Sequence record: AP019418.1
Direction: 5' to 3' (one strand)
DNA length: 64,000 nt
In this document: positions 3,948 through 58,182 of the stretch, in pieces
Position numbering within the stretch: position 1 is the stretch's first letter
Layout of the letters: the number at the start of each line of letters is the position of its first letter
Translations under genes and position numbers: made by a program
Notes under the pieces: generated by a model
Told to the model about the DNA's origin: nothing
The model's database searches: none
What the model saw: only the letters and a program-made list of their open reading frames with translations

Positions 3948-4097
3948 CTATTTAGTTACGAGCATTTCTTGACCATTGGGACCGATACGATGACCGAGGA
4001 TAACAGTTTCATTAGAAATAGTTTGCTCTTCAAACTTAGCGTTTACAAACAGTCCACCAAAAGTCAAACCAATAACCACTAGTGCGAATGCTTTCAT
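3948..4097 (-). CDS. small membrane protein (49 aa), not in ORF track
   Basis: MKAFALVVIGLTFGGLFVNAK...; AAGG RBS; first gene after early promoter at 4144-4151. Confidence 0.7.
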   Translation of the reverse strand: MKAFALVVIGLTFGGLFVNAKFEEQTISNETVILGHRIGPNGQEMLVTK

Positions 4098-4107
4098 TTT
4101 TAAAGTC

Positions 4108-4172
4108 CCTTTTTACATTAATTGAAGGTTAAATATCAAGTTAGTAATATACTGTTTAAATATGTTTGAATA
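4108..4172 (-). repeat. early promoter plus leader/RBS cassette, copy 1
   Basis: 4108-4154 is identical to 5959-6005 (47 bp); contains TATATTAC on the minus strand. Confidence 0.9.
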
Positions 4173-4187
4173 AGGGAGTAGTAGTTA

Positions 4188-4448
4188 TTACATATCGTGC
4201 AGGTAGGTCTCATCAATGATGGCACGGGCTAGCTCAATGAGACTATCTTCATCAACAACAATGTTACCATCTTTCCAGGTAGCGCTATGGGATAACCAGT
4301 TACGGTAATCCTTACCTCGTACAGGATTGATGCATACCTGACGAGTAGCTGCATCACGGTCACCACGGAAACCCATGATAGCACGTGCACGACGGATTGC
4401 TTCTTTCTCCAAGTCTTCGTCAGATTTAAAAGTCAGGAAAGTTGTCAT
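4188..4448 (-). CDS. hypothetical protein (86 aa)
   Basis: ORF track; AAGGA RBS. Confidence 0.75.
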   Translation of the reverse strand: MTTFLTFKSDEDLEKEAIRRARAIMGFRGDRDAATRQVCINPVRGKDYRNWLSHSATWKDGNIVVDEDSLIELARAIIDETYLHDM

Positions 4449-4862: not shown

Positions 4863-4914
4863 TTTTAAACTCCAACTAATGTATTAAAAAAATATGTCTA
4901 TATTGAAAATAAAG

Positions 4915-4932
4915 CCCTCCCCGAAGGGAGGG
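4915..4932 (-). terminator. CCCTCCC-TTCG-GGGAGGG family terminator
   Basis: hairpin plus T-tract; motif recurs many times in the window. Confidence 0.85.
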
Positions 4933-4963
4933 TGTATGTCGCCAATAAGTGTTACTAATTTAT

Positions 4964-5176
4964 TTAGTTAGTTTGACCATACGTTCTTTCAAAGTTGTTT
5001 ACATCATAACCTGAGTGGTGTGTTGCAGAACCACCTGAAGTAGTATCTATAATCTTAACTACCACTTCATCATTTTCAATGTAAACCGACAGTTTATCTC
5101 GCATAAAATCCACGTGGTCATTTCGAGAACGTAGATATTTCATTACAGCTTCGCCACTGATTTTACTGTTAGCCAT
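4964..5176 (-). CDS. hypothetical protein (70 aa)
   Basis: ORF track. Confidence 0.7.
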   Translation of the reverse strand: MANSKISGEAVMKYLRSRNDHVDFMRDKLSVYIENDEVVVKIIDTTSGGSATHHSGYDVNNFERTYGQTN

Positions 5177-6028: not shown

Positions 6029-6042
6029 TCGGTAGGGGAGGG

Positions 6043-12895: not shown

Positions 12896-14779
12896 ATGAA
12901 TAAAATGCTAAACTTCCTAAACCGTACGCTATATAGCGGTACTGAAAAAGTATCTTCAAAAGCTACACCAAGTCTAGAACACTTTAAAACAAATGTTGAA
13001 CAAGTAGATAAAAAGATTCTACAACCCTTTAGTACTAAATTTAAAACCATTCTAAAAGAATGTTACAGTAATGAAGAGTGGGTTGAAGAACAATCATTTA
13101 TTGAAGAACCTATTGATCTTGGTTCAGCTGCACGCGGTCTTACCGAGCGCGGTATTATGCGTGGTGATTGGGGACGCTTAGCGCATTCCACTATTAAAGA
13201 AGCAGAAGGTATGATGCGTACTTATAGTGGTCGTCTAAATGAAGATATGGAGGCATCTGAAATTAATGAAGTAATTCAAGATATGCCTTATAACTTCACA
13301 GCTGGCTCAGCTAATACTAGCCGTTTAGAAGAAGATGATTCTATTTTTGTTGAAGCAGATACAACTGTAGTTGAACCTCTGTCTAAGCAGACTCTGCCAA
13401 AAGTAGCAGAACTTACTAACCAACTAGTAGAAGTTTATAACCGAATCACTGAAGAATTTACAGAAACTGGTATTGCTAAAGTTGAACAAGTTGAACAGCC
13501 AGCAGTTCTTGTAGCACTTGGTGAGATCATTAGTAGTTTTAATAAACTAATTGATGCTTCATGTGGTGCTCTACCAGTGGAAGAAACTGTTATTGTAGAG
13601 GAGGATCCGTTACCTGCCATTGTTACTGGTCCAACTACTGAACCCATTGATGGTGAAATTCCACCTGTTGATGCTATTAATAATTCTGCGGCATTAGAAG
13701 AGTTTATTGAAGAAGTACTAAGTACTAATCCAGAATTCATTAAATACCAAAGTATGAATGATAGTAATATTGATTCATATCTAACTGGAGATGACTGGAT
13801 TATACTAAAATTTAAAGATGGTTCTTATTATTTATACAATGCCCAGAGTGCTGGTGAAACAAATATAGAAATCATGAAAGATATGGCCGAAACTGGTAGT
13901 GGTCTTAATGGTTTTATAAATCGAGTTATTCGTGGCGGGTATGTAGAGAAGTCCATCATTAATACTCCCGGTTTTATACAAGTCTCAAATGAAGGTCTTA
14001 TCGACACCATTAAGAGTATCTTCGACTCTGGCCCTGAGATCAATCTTGATAAAAAGAAGAAAGCTATTGCTACACTGAAAAGTACCTATGGTGATGCCAA
14101 ATGGGTGGCAGAAGCAAAGCTTAAAACCGGCGAAGTAAAAGTATCGAGTTACGAGACGTTCGCGTCTAATGATCCTAAGACCGCAAAAGCCAATATCACT
14201 AATGCTGTAGCTAAAGCTGATCGTCACAACCAGAAAGTTCTGGATGAGAACAGTAAGATACTAGCCCCCGTGGTTAATCTGTTCAAAGGGAATGATTGGC
14301 AAGACCCTAAGAAAGTCGCTACTCTTCTGGCTGAATGGAAACCCAATGTAAAGACAAACTTCCAAGAACCCAAATGGCCAGATAATGCTGGTGCTAAGAT
14401 TAAGTTGCTTGATGCTACCGGTATTGTGGAAGCAGCTAACGTTATCATTGACGTTCTGTCTAACAACACTAAGACTATTGCGGACACTTGGGTAGCCCAG
14501 TATCCTGACCTATCTGTCAATGGGGATATCTACAAACATAAGCTATCCACTATTAAAGATAAAGATGCTCTTGAGGATGTATATCTGCTGGCTAAAAGGG
14601 CCGATAATGCCATTCTTAACATTCATGCATCGTACGACGACGCTAAGGTTGAATCTACATATCGAGTATTTGCTATCGACATGTTGAAACTAATGCAAGC
14701 ATCTGTCAGTAGCTTCCCAAGTGGTTCAACCGTAGAGAACACCAATGAACGCAATACGGTCATTGGTATTGAAGAATAA
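12896..14779 (+). CDS. virion head protein, phiKZ gp303-like, with KTSC-like module
   Basis: 627 aa; acidic N-terminal half with S/A-x-E motifs (SLE, ALE, SNE) as cut by the phiKZ head protease; WIILKFKDGSYYLY...GSGLNGFINR KTSC-like segment; position next to nrdAB. Confidence 0.6.
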   Translation: MNKMLNFLNRTLYSGTEKVSSKATPSLEHFKTNVEQVDKKILQPFSTKFKTILKECYSNEEWVEEQSFIEEPIDLGSAARGLTERGIMRGDWGRLAHSTIKEAEGMMRTYSGRLNEDMEASEINEVIQDMPYNFTAGSANTSRLEEDDSIFVEADTTVVEPLSKQTLPKVAELTNQLVEVYNRITEEFTETGIAKVEQVEQPAVLVALGEIISSFNKLIDASCGALPVEETVIVEEDPLPAIVTGPTTEPIDGEIPPVDAINNSAALEEFIEEVLSTNPEFIKYQSMNDSNIDSYLTGDDWIILKFKDGSYYLYNAQSAGETNIEIMKDMAETGSGLNGFINRVIRGGYVEKSIINTPGFIQVSNEGLIDTIKSIFDSGPEINLDKKKKAIATLKSTYGDAKWVAEAKLKTGEVKVSSYETFASNDPKTAKANITNAVAKADRHNQKVLDENSKILAPVVNLFKGNDWQDPKKVATLLAEWKPNVKTNFQEPKWPDNAGAKIKLLDATGIVEAANVIIDVLSNNTKTIADTWVAQYPDLSVNGDIYKHKLSTIKDKDALEDVYLLAKRADNAILNIHASYDDAKVESTYRVFAIDMLKLMQASVSSFPSGSTVENTNERNTVIGIEE

Positions 14780-14801
14780 CTTACTGAGTATGTAATGATA
14801 T

Positions 14802-14945
14802 GTAGAAATGATCCCTCCCCCTCGTTTCTACATTAGTCATAATAAATCGGAGCCAGTCCCCCTTCCAACTGGCTCCCAGAGAGTAAAACTCTTTGCTGGG
14901 CATTAATGACGATATATCGCCTCCCTTCGGGGAGGCTTTATATTT
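14802..14945 (+). ncRNA. candidate structured sRNA with two C-rich loops
   Basis: starts at TATG motif; stems 14801-11/14822-32 and 14849-57/14868-76; own terminator 14919-14936; no ORF. Confidence 0.7.
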
Positions 14946-14999
14946 TGTTTTTACGTGAGTATGTTAAAATATGTACAAATAACATAGAGTAATTATAAA

Positions 15000-15452
15000 A
15001 TGATTAAGAATGAACTTTTACCAGGGTTAATCTATGCCCAAAAAGAATTTGATAAAATTGCAGCTAATGTAAAAGACTATGATAAATATAAAAGACGTGA
15101 AGCTGGTAGGGCAAGCGCCGTTTTAAGAAGTCTAGTGAATAATATTGTAAATCAAAATAAACCATCTTCACTTGAACATGAAGGTAAAGTTAGTACTACT
15201 AATACTAATGAATATTTAGAAGAAGTTAATAATTACTTCTTTAACATTAATAATATTAAATTAATTTCTCCTAAACTCATAAAAGAGAAATTAACAATTG
15301 ATCTAATGAATATTTATGTTAAATGGAATATGATTGGAGTGGCTGGCCGAAATGATGTGCCAATTATTGAGCACAGAATTAATGATTGGTGCGAAGTGAC
15401 CGATGTCTACATTAATGGTAATAAGATAACTTCTTTACAATGGCCACGTTGA
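15000..15452 (+). CDS. hypothetical protein (150 aa)
   Basis: ORF track. Confidence 0.7.
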   Translation: MIKNELLPGLIYAQKEFDKIAANVKDYDKYKRREAGRASAVLRSLVNNIVNQNKPSSLEHEGKVSTTNTNEYLEEVNNYFFNINNIKLISPKLIKEKLTIDLMNIYVKWNMIGVAGRNDVPIIEHRINDWCEVTDVYINGNKITSLQWPR

Positions 15453-15510: not shown

Positions 15511-15595
15511 GCCCGAATGGTGAAATTGGTAAACACAGAAGACTTAAAATCTTCCGGCTACGGTCTTGTCGGTTCGAATCCGACTTCGGGCACCA
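15511..15595 (+). tRNA. tRNA-Leu(TAA)
   Basis: GCCCGAA/TTCGGGC acceptor stem; CT-TAA-AA loop; long variable arm; GTTCGAATC; encoded CCA. Confidence 0.97.
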
Positions 15596-16002: not shown

Positions 16003-16079
16003 GGGCCTATAGCTCAGTTGGTTAGAGCAGGCGACTCATAATCGCTTGGTCGCAGGTTCAAGTCCTGCTGGGCCCACCA
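16003..16079 (+). tRNA. tRNA with CAT anticodon, most likely tRNA-Ile2 (lysidine, reads AUA)
   Basis: body GCAGGCGACTCATAATCGCTTGGTCGC closely resembles enterobacterial ileX; G1-C72 paired and no run of three G-C pairs in the anticodon stem, so not an initiator. Confidence 0.85.
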
Positions 16080-16999: not shown

Positions 17000-17051
17000 T
17001 AAAATATTACTGGTTATGTAATACTATGTAGGAAGTCATGTCCATACGTTT

Positions 17052-17134: not shown

Positions 17135-17210
<76 letters not shown>

Positions 17211-18302: not shown

Positions 18303-18354
18303 AATAATAATATTTATAACTATTTAGATAATTATACTGGCACGATGATATTAT

Positions 18355-18466
18355 GTAAGAGTACTATAATAAAGTATTCTTAAATCTATCCACTAAACAC
18401 ACTCGGTGGTAGAACTTATTATAGAGTGTGTCTAAATGCCAGGGGTTTGCCACCCCTGGTTATATT
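18355..18466 (+). ncRNA. candidate structured sRNA (two hairpins, possible pseudoknot, terminator)
   Basis: starts at TATG; stems 18356-65/18373-82, 18394-404/18424-34, 18439-46/18452-59 plus T-rich tail; no ORF. Confidence 0.6.
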
Positions 18467-18586
18467 CATTGTTACTATTATAAATTCATTTATAGATGAG
18501 AAAAGGTTTTATCACCTTTTCAAAATCGGCATTTAATTCCAGTTAAAAAACTGAATCTATGCTACATTGTAATAAAGGAGTCTATT

Positions 18587-19099: not shown

Positions 19100-19259
19100 A
19101 ATTAGTAACTTTGATAGTTTCTAATAAGATTAACTACACGTTATTTACATAATGTCATAACAAGAAATAAATAATACTCAGATTGTAATAATATGTAGTT
19201 ATTACATATCTATATTAGGTTGTCAGTAACTCATCTCTAATATAAAATCGCCATTTAAT

Positions 19260-24884: not shown

Positions 24885-25005
24885 AATAAAGCCCTCCCCG
24901 AAGGGAGGGCATTATCAATAGGTGGGATCTCGGCGGCACCTTCATTTGCGGACGGGAACGCTGAAGGGAGATAGTCCGGGAGATCCCGATTTGGGTATTC
25001 TTTAC
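24885..25005 (-). ncRNA. candidate GC-rich structured sRNA with UUCCCGUC apical loop
   Basis: TATG at 25008-25005; nested stems GGGATCTC/GAGATCCC, CCTTCA/TGAAGG, GCG/CGC; terminator 24891-24910. Confidence 0.65.
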
Positions 25006-25394: not shown

Positions 25395-25535
25395 TATATT
25401 TTCCTCTTAGATGTCAAAAACCCTCCCCGATCAGGGGAGGGTATCTCATTGGTACTTCTTCAGCAAAACTGAAACTAAGATAAAAGAGCAATCGTAAAGG
25501 AACTACATAGAATAGTGTATTTCTTTTACTATTTT

Positions 25536-48907: not shown

Positions 48908-49025
48908 TGTATTGCCCTCTTGGTTATTAAATTCATATTTGTAATATAGCTTTTTAAATAGTTTAAATACAAAAAAAGATAAATAAAACCCTCCCCGAAG
49001 GGAGGGTGTATATTAAGTAATTATT

Positions 49026-49682
49026 TTAACATACAATTTCATTATCAGAAAATAGTTTATTATATTCTTTTAGTGCATCCCCACCAACCATAGTACACCT
49101 GCCATAGAGAACAGATATAGCCAGATCTTTAATAGCGGGGTGACAATTATTTAACTTACTGATTAGTTGAGCTTTCTCAGTCAGATACAGTTCAGCAAAA
49201 TCAGGCTTATCATTAACAATCGACCACATGTTTGAAATGGAATCTAGTAACTTAAGAGATTGACCACTCCATGAAATGCGAGAAAGTCTTTCATGTTGTA
49301 AACTAATCCTAGTTTTACGATTACCTTCGTAAGTTACATTTGTTAGTTCAGTTACTAAATTAACAACAGGGATTGAGAATAGTTTAGTTAGATCAGAAGC
49401 AGTTACAGCAGTATCCTCAATTACATCATGTAACCATGCTGCTTTATAAGCAGCGTGAGATAGGTCGAATAATTGCGCCATCTCAGCTACTTGTAATAAA
49501 TGATGCCAGTAAGGTTTTCCTGAACCATCTCGCAATTGACCAACAGCAGTATGTGCCGCAATGGCATATGATGCAGCCATTGCATTACCCGCATTGGAAT
49601 ATTTGCCATTACCTAGATGGTTAGTTAAGAGAATATTCTCTTTCCCTCCTTCTAGAATATCGATAATTTCATTCATTAGCAT
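49026..49682 (-). CDS. RelA/SpoT-type HD hydrolase (small alarmone hydrolase, Mesh1-like)
   Basis: AH..Q.R..SGKPY..H...VA; AAWLHDVIEDT; LKLLDSISNM; no synthetase domain. Confidence 0.85.
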   Translation of the reverse strand: MLMNEIIDILEGGKENILLTNHLGNGKYSNAGNAMAASYAIAAHTAVGQLRDGSGKPYWHHLLQVAEMAQLFDLSHAAYKAAWLHDVIEDTAVTASDLTKLFSIPVVNLVTELTNVTYEGNRKTRISLQHERLSRISWSGQSLKLLDSISNMWSIVNDKPDFAELYLTEKAQLISKLNNCHPAIKDLAISVLYGRCTMVGGDALKEYNKLFSDNEIVC

Positions 49683-51969: not shown

Positions 51970-52080
51970 CTATTAAAACCTCGACACATTAATTTGATTT
52001 TGTAATACACACATGTAATATATATCTCAAATAAAATTTAGTGCAATAGCCCTCCCCGAAGGGAGGGCCATATGCTCTTA

Positions 52081-56021: not shown

Positions 56022-57111
56022 CTCTTATGTTCACCCAGGGTCGTTAATCCTGAGCCGTTTACTTAAATGACTTTATAACCAGAATACTTTGGATTCTTGC
56101 TGTTAATTCGGTATGTTATTGTACCCTGTGATACTCCGAGAGCCTTAGCTGCATCGGCCTGGGATAAATAAACAACACCGTCCACTTCAAGTTTGTTTGA
56201 GTTAGTTGGCTTTATACTGCGTTTGTTATCCGCCAACTTTTTTCTGGTTTCTTCGGAATGTGTTTTACCGTAGAATGGATTACGTTCGCCTGTTCTCTGA
56301 GAAGCTATCTCCGACATCCTGGCTCTTGTCTCATCACTAGCTTTAATGCCAAGACGGTAAGTGTTACCCGTGTGTAACTCGGATAGAGCTACCTTAACTT
56401 CTTCTGTGTGAGTACGACCATACATCCCATTCTGCTCACCTGGTCGACCATACTTTTCCTGACGAGCCTCGGCTCCAATCTCATCAAGTCTGATACGTAT
56501 TGTATCACTCCGCTTCTCGATGATTTGTTCTTTGAGGTTATGCCTGGTTAAGTTATCACCACCCTTGGAGTGTCTACCAATATTAAGAAGGTTACCTTCT
56601 TCTTCATGCTTGGTTATCCACATCTGTTCGAGTGTAAATGCTGATTCCCGACTTTCACAACGATAGTACTTTAACGAGAATCTTTCACCGTTATCGTATT
56701 CTTGTTGTAATGGGTAGTTATGGTGCTTGGAATTACTAAGGTCTCTGAAATGTCGTTGAACGCGCTTAACTAAATCTCGCGCACTTCCGACATATACCTT
56801 TCCTTCTTTGGTGAATAGGCAATACACATAAGCTACGTCATTAATAACACCCTCCTTATCTGGCGGAGTCATTAAGTAAACCGCTGCATGTCTCCATGCA
56901 GGACAGACTATATCACGATCTCTTAAAAAGAGACCCCTACCTTTTCGGACCACTTGGTCCTACTCTACTCCCTTCCTCTTCTCAGAGTGGTTTCGATAGT
57001 CGTTAGGCATTTATGACCGTAGTCAATTTAGCACGGGATTGTCTCATAGAGAGTTTCCCCGTTTAGATAGGTTATTCGACTAGGATTGCTCCTAGAAGGC
57101 GCTAGTATTTA
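56022..57111 (-). mobile_element. group I intron in thyA
   Basis: 5' splice site after U with P1 GCGU/UA paired to UAGCGC; GACUA...AUAUAGUC P7; AAACGGGGAAAC and GACAAUCCCGUG core motifs; terminal G; splicing restores YQR-SxD. Confidence 0.93.
56063..56872 (-). CDS. intron-encoded GIY-YIG homing endonuclease (I-TevI/I-BmoI-like, NUMOD3 repeats)
   Basis: YVY...VYVGS...R...H; LEQ.WI; NLLN; two GxxNxxYGxTHxEE NUMOD3 repeats; C-terminal HTH; start placed at MTPPD. Confidence 0.9.
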   Translation of the reverse strand: MTPPDKEGVINDVAYVYCLFTKEGKVYVGSARDLVKRVQRHFRDLSNSKHHNYPLQQEYDNGERFSLKYYRCESRESAFTLEQMWITKHEEEGNLLNIGRHSKGGDNLTRHNLKEQIIEKRSDTIRIRLDEIGAEARQEKYGRPGEQNGMYGRTHTEEVKVALSELHTGNTYRLGIKASDETRARMSEIASQRTGERNPFYGKTHSEETRKKLADNKRSIKPTNSNKLEVDGVVYLSQADAAKALGVSQGTITYRINSKNPKYSGYKVI

Positions 57112-58182
57112 ACGCTGGTAGAGCTGGCAGCTCAATGCACGTTTAGGAACACCAAGTTTATCCCACAGTGCGTGATCAGTTTCCGGTTGCGCACCTTCAA
57201 GGAAAATACGTTGAGCTTCAGTGTCGTTAAGTTTGACCCAGTCATACCGTTCTTCTAGCGTCAGTTCACGAGTCCAGAACTGAAAGAAGCTATGACATGG
57301 TGGGAGCGCCTGTTCATCAACGAGTTGCGGTGACCACGCACAAACGATGATTCGACGGGAATCAGGGTTTGTCTTAAGTTGATCAATCACGTCTTGAATT
57401 TGATCAATACGACGTGTTACAACACAGCGGTCATTCTCCATACACGTACCAGGAATATCAACTACGAAGTTAAAGCCACGCTTCTCATAATCCACCCACT
57501 CATATTTAGGGATTACACGAGTGTCTTCAAGATCACGCCAAGTCTTACCGTAAACGGCACCTAGATCGCCCCCGATGAGTTTCAGAGGCTTAACTCCAAA
57601 TAGCAATTTATATAGTCGTTTACCATATTCATATTTAATTAGTTCTGGTGTTACACTCTCATCGAAATCTATAGTAGATACTGCCAGCCATTGGCTAGTG
57701 TTAACACCAATTACATGCGTAGCATCAATATTAATGGTTGGATATTGATTCCAAAAGCTAGCTATCTCATCATCACTTAAAGAAGCTTCAAACTCATCTC
57801 TAGTTTGAATGATTACTTCATCATCTAAACAATGAAAATAAAGGGCAAATGGGCCACCAACTTTCTTTAGAATAGCTGAGTCAAGCTCTTCTTGATTTAA
57901 CTCACGATACATCGCGGTATTTGGTTTAACCCATTCATTCCAAATGCGTACGCCATTTTCAATTAAATAATCTACACGAGTATCACCAGAAAGCATCCAG
58001 AACAATTCATGGATAACAGATGGAAGATGAATTTTCTTAGTAGTTACTACGGGTAGAACGTTGTTACGTAAACTATAACGTTCTTGTTGACCAAACATGC
58101 TCTGAGTACCAGTACCAGTACGGTCACCTTTATGCACACCGTGTTCTTTAACTAAACGAATTGAATTAAGATATTGTTCCAT
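57112..58182 (-). CDS. thyA: thymidylate synthase, exon 1, with large insertions
   Basis: DRTGTG; TTKK; ELFWMLSG; IWNEW; GDLGAVYG; SRRII; ALPPCH; LYQR followed by TAA inside the intron. Confidence 0.95.

Follow-up and report, generated by a model that had tools for sequence, protein, structure and literature searches.

The window analyzed here is the final 64 kb (64,000 nucleotides) of a phiKZ-type Pseudomonas phage (sequence record AP019418.1), and it encodes a small RNA (sRNA) of 141 nt on its plus strand at 14802 to 14942, in the gap between the homologues of PHIKZ303 and PHIKZ302. Locus identity, a published transcript, and the fold identify it as the equivalent of the phiKZ transcript TU237, so that the existence of this sRNA was already known. 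New in this analysis are its homologues in Pawinskivirus and in phage phiPA3, the covariation of its stems, and the conservation of its loops. As judged from the compared sequences, the stems appear to be a scaffold under selection that is kept by compensatory change and holds two C-rich loops single-stranded. We favor the reading that the locus is an independently transcribed phage sRNA gene whose C-rich loops would serve as seeds for pairing in trans, and we assign it a probability of about 0.42.

In the minimum free energy (MFE) fold of the plus strand (-57.7 kcal/mol; z = -7.3, with none of 200 shuffles folding as well), the RNA is composed of a 5′ hairpin, a three-way junction, and an intrinsic terminator. 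Hairpin 1 (14800 to 14811 pairing with 14822 to 14833) has 12 bp, including one U-G pair (U14809-G14824), or 10 bp in an RNA that begins at G14802, and it presents loop 1, UCCCUCCCCC, at 14812 to 14821. The junction domain spans 14836 to 14910 and is closed by the helix GUCAU (14836 to 14840)/AUGAC (14906 to 14910). It contains hairpin 2, a perfect 9-bp stem of GGAGCCAGU (14849 to 14857) and ACUGGCUCC (14868 to 14876) with loop 2, CCCCCUUCCA, at 14858 to 14867, as well as hairpin 3 (14878 to 14884 pairing with 14888 to 14894, within the element 14877 to 14895), which has 7 to 8 bp and an AAA loop. The terminator, GCCUCCC-UUCG-GGGAGGC at 14919 to 14936, has a hairpin energy of -14.1 kcal/mol and is followed by UUUAUAUUUUGUUUUU in a U-rich tract that extends to 14952; it corresponds to terminator T131 of phiKZ. 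The 12-bp stem with its single U-G pair, the 9-bp stem, the third hairpin, the closing helix, and the UUCG terminator had all been proposed in an earlier reading of this DNA from its letters alone (referred to below as the sequence-only reading), and each is present in the sequence and recovered in the MFE fold, which shows exactly this architecture. The minus strand folds with z = -4.6.

In the predicted ensemble, loops 1 and 2 each have an unpaired probability of 1.0. Stretches of 10 nt with at least seven C or at least seven G residues form 49 clusters in the window, compared with 28 in shuffled sequence. These are mostly terminator-hairpin arms, and the two at the sRNA locus are unusual in that they lie in loops and have no G-rich partner. 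The gap had been described as free of open reading frames (ORFs), which holds in the useful sense. In phiKZ and 124.01, the ATG of a 32-aa ORF at 14808 to 14906 is replaced by ATA; Pawinskivirus and phiPA3 lack the ORF, and for this want of conservation a small-peptide reading was discarded. A tRNA-like or T-box-like reading was discarded as well: ARAGORN, which searches for tRNA and transfer-messenger RNA, reported nothing in the gap, and by eye the loops are unlike the anticodon loops of tRNA-Pro and tRNA-Leu. Rfam gave no match at gathering level in 14750 to 15000, and a covariance model search found no second copy of the sRNA in the window.

The motif TATG at 14799 to 14802 is invariant in 12 of the 12 sequences compared, as is the TAGA that directly follows it, and the non-virion RNA polymerase of phiKZ initiates at the G of TATG (Yakunina et al. 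2015, PMC4666361). The sequence-only reading had taken G14802 as the likely +1, and this assignment agrees with the documented start motif. About 21 nt before the start site lies a promoter-like element, TAACTTACT (14777 to 14785, plus strand), which overlaps the stop codon of the PHIKZ303 homologue. In the form TAANTTAC(T/C), it resembles the phiKZ middle-promoter motif AAanTTACc, centred near -24 (PMC4666361), and would presumably act as such. Most Phikzvirus genomes, Pawinskivirus, and phiPA3 have kept this element, whereas phiKZ proper lacks it.

The published transcript was described by Putzeys et al. (2024, microLife, PMC10914365). By ONT-cappable-seq (ONT, Oxford Nanopore Technologies) of phiKZ, these authors mapped TU237 as a 141-nt primary transcript upstream of PHIKZ302 that ends at terminator T131. 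Northern blotting confirmed its length and abundance and also revealed a full-length read-through form; both forms have a common 5′ end, and the short RNA ends at T131, past which some transcription continues (PMC10914365). TU237 is listed, with no function assigned, among 17 phiKZ noncoding RNA (ncRNA) candidates derived from 5′ untranslated regions (5′UTRs); it is called a putative regulatory ncRNA arising from premature termination, and the main text contains no structure model, loop analysis, or cross-genus comparison (PMC10914365). An earlier differential RNA sequencing (dRNA-seq) study of early infection had predicted a single sRNA of 75 nt, for which northern confirmation failed. Our literature search found no later publication that gives TU237 a function.

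Counted from G14802 to position 14942 in the terminator U-tract, the RNA has 141 nt, which equals the published length of TU237. With TATG at 14799 to 14802, the start, end, and size predicted by the sequence-only reading therefore agree with experiment: its discrete, separately initiated plus-strand sRNA of about 140 nt matches a 141-nt species that has its own start site and this terminator (PMC10914365). Locus, strand, length, and terminator are all shared between phiKZ TU237 and the window RNA, and the two differ at few bases.

With one mismatch, the sRNA's own promoter-like sequence, TAAT-NN-TATGTAG, is found again on the plus strand directly before the tRNA-Asp/tRNA-Asn pair (17019 to 17032) and before the second tRNA-Asn (19186 to 19199), and phiPA3 has a similar TAATATGTAGAG before its tRNA-Leu (locus L041, at about 5832). 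From this recurrence, the sRNA and the phage tRNA genes seem to share a promoter type, which suggests a common promoter class for phage stable RNAs. Between the sRNA terminator and the start codon of PHIKZ302 (14943 to 14999, plus strand), there is another conserved TATG-bearing stretch, AAAATATGTAC. It could be a separate promoter of PHIKZ302, in which case the sRNA would be fully independent of that gene.

The sRNA is conserved beyond the genus Phikzvirus. BLAST searches returned a 72%-identical match to its 5′ half in P. aeruginosa phages of approximately 300 kb, among them PS119XW, phiLBG22, PA1C, and BRkr; PS119XW is classified as Pawinskivirus. A third homologue, located by synteny, lies between the gp303-like gp375 and gp374 of phiPA3 (Miltoncavirus). 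The homologues occupy 4021 to 4205 of locus L002 in PS119XW and 4876 to 5045 of locus L041 in phiPA3. Every phage in which the sRNA was found infects P. aeruginosa. When folded independently, seven distinct Phikzvirus and Pawinskivirus homologues adopt an identical architecture that includes the junction-closing helix. Folded alone, the phiPA3 RNA also forms the three hairpins, with a different closure of the junction. A covariance model was built from a plain MAFFT alignment of Phikzvirus and Pawinskivirus sequences, with phiPA3 left out, and it found the unseen phiPA3 element with 57.9 bits (E = 3e-12). In the syntenic gaps of 201phi2-1 and Phabio, the element is absent, both by eye and by the covariance model. 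Two pattern scans of IMG/VR for hairpin 2 recovered only PA7, phiPA3, and chance matches in GC-rich coding DNA and yielded no further relatives.

The 201phi2-1 gap after the gp303 homologue (locus L043, 5296 to 5385) does hold a short unit that runs from a promoter-like site, TATATGTAAC, to a terminator. The stem of this terminator, CCCACAGC/GUUGUGGG, resembles the Pawinskivirus closing helix GACCACAGC/GUUGUGGUC, which may be a remnant or a coincidence.

Covariation was evaluated for 39 pairs in eight distinct sequences from three clades. Since MAFFT mis-registered the diverged closing helix, the structural alignment was built by hand, with N as the gap symbol. Standard pairs are formed in 96.0% of its cells, and 10 of the 39 pairs change on both sides. 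As a control, the 3′ partners were shifted by one to three columns, upon which 35 to 51% of cells pair and zero to two pairs change on both sides. Half of the two-sided changes, five pairs, fall in the junction closing helix, which reads GUCAU/AUGAC in the window, GACCACAGC/GUUGUGGUC in PS119XW, GAUCACAGC/GUUGUGAUC in PA1C, and CUCGGC/GUCGAG in phiPA3. Hairpin 1 contributes two such pairs, with G-U intermediates present, and hairpin 3 contributes one (A-U, G-C, or U-A) and has one mismatch in Pawinskivirus. In hairpin 2, the loop-closing pair is U-A, U-G, or C-G, and the next pair changes from G-C to C-G in phiPA3. G-U occurs in one sequence or another at seven or more pairs; on the minus strand these would be A-C mismatches, which fixes the plus strand as the functional one.

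The loops behave differently from the stems. The core of loop 2, CCCUUCCA, is invariant in all eight distinct sequences while the pairs that close it vary. Loop 1 reads UCCCUCCCCC in the window, UCCUUCCCCC in phiKZ proper, UCACUCCU in Pawinskivirus, and CCUACUCCU in phiPA3, and common to all four is CUCC only. This conserved part of loop 1 corresponds, by sequence, to the core of the anti-Shine-Dalgarno (anti-SD) sequence. C-to-U changes in the loops would still allow pairing with G. As a condition that would refute it, the sequence-only reading had named stems and C-rich loops that are not conserved or do not covary in relatives; the two-sided changes in 10 of the 39 pairs and the invariant loop-2 core speak against such a refutation. 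Directly downstream, Phikzvirus has PHIKZ302, Pawinskivirus has tRNA-Leu, and phiPA3 has gp374; a neighbor that differs in each genus argues against a gene-specific leader.

According to the favored reading, the non-virion RNA polymerase initiates at the conserved TATG, with G14802 as the likely +1, and transcribes hairpin 1 and then the three-way junction with hairpins 2 and 3. Most transcription ends at the strong intrinsic terminator, yielding an abundant RNA of about 141 nt, and a minority reads into PHIKZ302 and the tRNA genes, as literature and sequence together show. The covarying stems would hold the two C-rich loops permanently single-stranded, with CCCUUCCA and the CUCC core as the probable working surface. 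Most likely, the loops would be seeds that pair in trans with G-rich stretches of the GGAG or GGAA type, for example in the ribosome-binding sites of host mRNAs, and such pairing would alter translation or stability during infection. The pattern of conservation, together with the varying downstream gene, favors a trans-acting RNA that would contact G-rich RNA. The riboregulator proposed by the sequence-only reading is accordingly plausible and now better founded, in that conserved open loops appear to sit on a covarying scaffold; overall, that interpretation is partly supported.

Several points weigh against this reading. The covariation depends on a hand-made alignment that was fitted to the structure and comprises eight sequences from three clades, and loop 1 is conserved no further than CUCC. 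A target test, in which the 82 annotated phage start regions in the window were compared with internal control windows, gave no convincing target; the best duplexes have 5 to 6 bp and energies of -9 to -10.5 kcal/mol. Mean pairing energies were little better for start regions than for internal controls, with -4.8 versus -3.3 kcal/mol for loop 1 and -4.9 versus -3.8 kcal/mol for loop 2. The phage Shine-Dalgarno (SD) sites are A-rich (AGGA, GAGG, or AGGAG) and fit the loops poorly, so that any pairing with ribosome-binding sites would more likely involve GC-rich host messages. Conserved loops would suit a protein-binding site equally well. Finally, the discoverers of TU237 interpret the RNA as a 5′UTR product of conditional termination (PMC10914365).

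This last interpretation corresponds to a cis-acting leader, in which T131 would conditionally limit transcription into PHIKZ302 and the tRNA island and the short RNA would be a by-product. It accounts for the short and full-length forms with one 5′ end, for which the discoverers suggest conditional termination (PMC10914365). It also fits the presence of tRNA-Leu 0.05 to 0.9 kb downstream in all three genera and of the same promoter-like motif before the tRNA-Asp/tRNA-Asn pair and the second tRNA-Asn. In a variant of the leader, loop 1 could pair with the 3′ arm of the terminator, GGGGAGG at 14929 to 14935, and so favor read-through under some factor or condition. The sequence-only reading had pointed out that seven bases of loop 1 match this arm, which is correct (CCUCCCC/GGGGAGG), and loop 1 resembles the 5′ arm of the terminator. 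The interaction would be a pseudoknot, which lies outside the folding model. However, it shrinks from 7 bp in the window to 5 bp, one of them G-U, outside Phikzvirus, and the predicted ensemble contains no nested alternative structure that competes with the terminator. Moreover, the immediate downstream gene is not conserved, a second promoter-like site precedes the tRNA-Leu of phiPA3, and a leader leaves both the invariance of loop 2 and the conserved three-way junction unexplained. We regard it as rather unlikely. A further reading is a decoy or scaffold for a host or phage protein, with the conserved loops as recognition sites. An invariant loop on covarying stems is the pattern of protein-binding RNAs, and the fact that none of the 82 phage start regions offers a good RNA target points in the same direction. 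One conceivable client is a factor whose usual ligand is the C-rich 3′ end of 16S rRNA (GAUCACCUCCUUA); a similar sequence, GAUCCCUCC, lies at the top of hairpin 1. This stretch, taken with loop 1 (14810 to 14818, plus strand), is one base short of the universal 16S 3′ tail, GAUCACCUCC, and the match is short and of low complexity. It also differs between genera, Pawinskivirus having UCACUCCU at this position. The decoy is improbable in our judgment.

Two further explanations concern the terminators of the window and the opposite strand. Loop 1 contains CCCUCCCC, the complement of GGGGAGGG, which occurs eight times in the window versus 0.36 expected. The seven sites outside the sRNA are spread over six intergenic hairpins. 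Five of these are terminator-type hairpins of the form CCCUCCC-NNNN-GGGAGGG, and the sixth, at 6035, is weaker. The five are near-identical, have UUCG or a similar loop and a U-tract on the transcribed strand, and lie at 4913 to 4935, 24890 to 24909, 25419 to 25443, 48987 to 49009, and 52048 to 52067; the terminator of the sRNA is of the same type. The sequence-only reading had noted that loop 1 is the exact complement of this shared terminator arm and had proposed that the RNA invades terminator stems. The complementarity and the terminator family are present in the window as described, but full complementarity is lineage-specific: neither phiKZ proper nor the two other genera retain it, the conserved core is only CUCC/GGAG, and the idea of terminator invasion is weak for this reason. 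A trans-acting antiterminator that invades the GGGAGGG arms would, furthermore, have to reach a target that is sequestered within milliseconds by an adjacent, perfect, tetraloop-closed partner, and our literature search turned up no precedent for such a mechanism. We consider it very unlikely, despite the six additional hairpins that carry the loop-1 complement. Least credible is the view that the hairpins serve the PHIKZ303 mRNA, as its 3′UTR or as an element for its stability, or that the minus strand is the functional one, with loops that would be rich in GGA and RsmA-like. The hairpins do start 20 nt after the PHIKZ303 stop codon, and the minus strand also folds well. The primary 5′ end, though, was mapped on the PHIKZ302 strand (PMC10914365), and a conserved promoter motif separates the stop codon from hairpin 1. 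The G-U pairs, which would become A-C mismatches, and the published strand led us to reject a minus-strand RsmA sponge, and as far as sequence and literature allow, both the minus-strand and the 3′UTR readings are excluded.

Among known RNA families, the closest in design is ar14 (Rfam RF02344), an alphaproteobacterial sRNA with two hairpins that carry C-rich, anti-SD-like loops, CCUCCUCCC, and to whose model hairpins 1 and 2 of the phage RNA align. Its relatives are the 'cuckoo', CcsR, and AbcR sRNAs. With 19.9 bits (E = 0.07) against a gathering score of 58.8, the phage RNA is not a member of ar14; the host clade differs, and the three-way junction and third hairpin of the phage RNA go beyond the ar14 design. 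The likeness is therefore one of design, not descent. RsaE and RNAIII of S. aureus also carry C-rich unpaired loops on stable stems. They share with the phage RNA the principle that such loops could pair with G-rich ribosome-binding sites, with no relationship in sequence, but their targets have been demonstrated, whereas the A-rich SD sites of the phage match its own RNA poorly. The tRNA cluster of phage T4 contains the stable RNAs species 1 and 2 (rnaC/rnaD), which are cut out of a tRNA precursor. Compared by description only, these are likewise small, structured, abundant RNAs in a phage tRNA island; in contrast to them, the window RNA has its own start and terminator.

In phiPA3 and Pawinskivirus, approximately 45 extra nt lie between the junction and the terminator, including UCUCCUUGUUGUGUUGAUG, which is identical in both genera. 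The segment UCUCCUUGUUGUGUUGAUG(GUUGGCA) is single-stranded and directly precedes the terminator; it maps to 4974 to 5006 in phiPA3 (locus L041) and to L002 4150 to 4168, L008 751 to 769, and 741 to 759 in both L009 and L010. In a permissive Rfam scan, the best match of the phiPA3 RNA was Pseudomon-1/ErsA (RF01719), with 22.9 bits (E = 0.011) against a gathering score of 50, and the aligned part is the 5′ single-stranded region. When whole loci were scanned, this match was lost through E-value scaling. For comparison, we used more than 115 ErsA loci from Pseudomonas genomes, a set that does not include P. aeruginosa ErsA itself. The phiPA3 stretch GAUUCUCCU-UGUUGUGUUGAUGGUUGGCAUAAC is identical to ErsA GAUGCUCCUAUGUUGUGUUAAGUGUUGGCAGAUA at 26 of 34 positions. 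In shuffle tests, phiPA3 scored p = 3e-4 against the commonest ErsA variant (0 of 3,000 dinucleotide shuffles) and p = 0.008 against the P. delhiensis variant. Pawinskivirus reached p = 0.01 to 0.02 against the commonest variant and was not significant against that of P. delhiensis. Against both variants, the window RNA gave p = 0.55, and no RF01719 match was found in the window. An ErsA profile run against 218 kb of phage sequence matched the phiPA3 site only (E = 0.22).

The matching part of ErsA is its domain II, a U-rich, unstructured stretch of 34 nt that pairs with the amrZ, anr, and fleN messages (PMC5819304, PMC8575079, PMC13613067). Separately, gradient profiling (Grad-seq) showed that, 10 min into phiKZ infection, host ErsA has shifted to the 30S and pellet fractions (PMC8545117). 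These data suggest, without being conclusive, an ErsA-like module in the relatives. We consider it doubtful that the sRNAs form a modular jumbo-phage family in which the ancestral form (phiPA3 and Pawinskivirus) would carry a copy of ErsA domain II and the phiKZ lineage would have deleted the module and kept the 5′ scaffold. Such mimicry could connect to the shift of ErsA between fractions after infection. Outside the ErsA-like segment, the RNA is unrelated to ErsA. The window RNA lacks this segment altogether, and its sole ErsA-like trait is the 8-mer CCCUCCCC, common to loop 1 and the loop of the ErsA terminator hairpin, which is not significant. A role as a sponge of ErsA was rejected, as pairing of the phage sRNA with ErsA is no better than that with shuffled ErsA.

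Nucleus-building lytic jumbo phages run their own transcription, and almost nothing is known of their regulatory RNAs. With a covarying fold, defined conserved loops that are open to mutation or blocking, and homologues in three genera, which make comparative target prediction possible, this sRNA is among the most tractable candidates for learning the role of an sRNA in jumbo phages. Should the ErsA-like module of its relatives prove real, a virulent phage would have copied the seed of a host sRNA, and this mimic of an envelope-stress and biofilm regulator would offer a direct test of phage access to Hfq-dependent host networks.

The window equals positions 215096 to 279095 of Pseudomonas phage PA02. 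By BLAST, a 1.2-kb stretch around the sRNA is 100% identical to PA02, OMKO1, and other Pseudomonas phages and 95 to 99% identical to most Phikzvirus genomes. The 220-bp gap at 14780 to 14999 corresponds to phiKZ 273952 to 274163 on the minus strand, with 94% identity and the same flanking genes. Upstream, on the plus strand, lies the PHIKZ303 homologue (12896 to 14779), which encodes a virion (head) structural protein. Downstream, on the same strand, the PHIKZ302 homologue (15000 to 15452) is followed by a tRNA island of seven tRNA genes, the first of which is the tRNA-Leu at 15511. A tRNA of this region with the anticodon CAT (16003 to 16079, plus strand) is assigned to Met by ARAGORN and to Ile in the PA02 record, and tRNA-Asn(GTT) occurs twice in the window, at 17135 and 19260.

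The gap between the PHIKZ298 and PHIKZ297 homologues (about 18350 to 18470, plus strand) corresponds to another published phiKZ ncRNA (3′UTR_PHIKZ298/5′UTR_PHIKZ297; phiKZ 270595 to 270485) and contains the hairpin GCCAGGGG-UUUGC-CACCCCUGG at 18438 to 18460. On the minus strand, the gene at 49026 to 49682 is annotated in PA02 as a GTP pyrophosphokinase, which would give the phage an alarmone-synthetase-like gene. A match to a group I intron at 56884 to 57121, also on the minus strand, scored 69.4 bits (E = 1.6e-15), which is above the Rfam gathering threshold.

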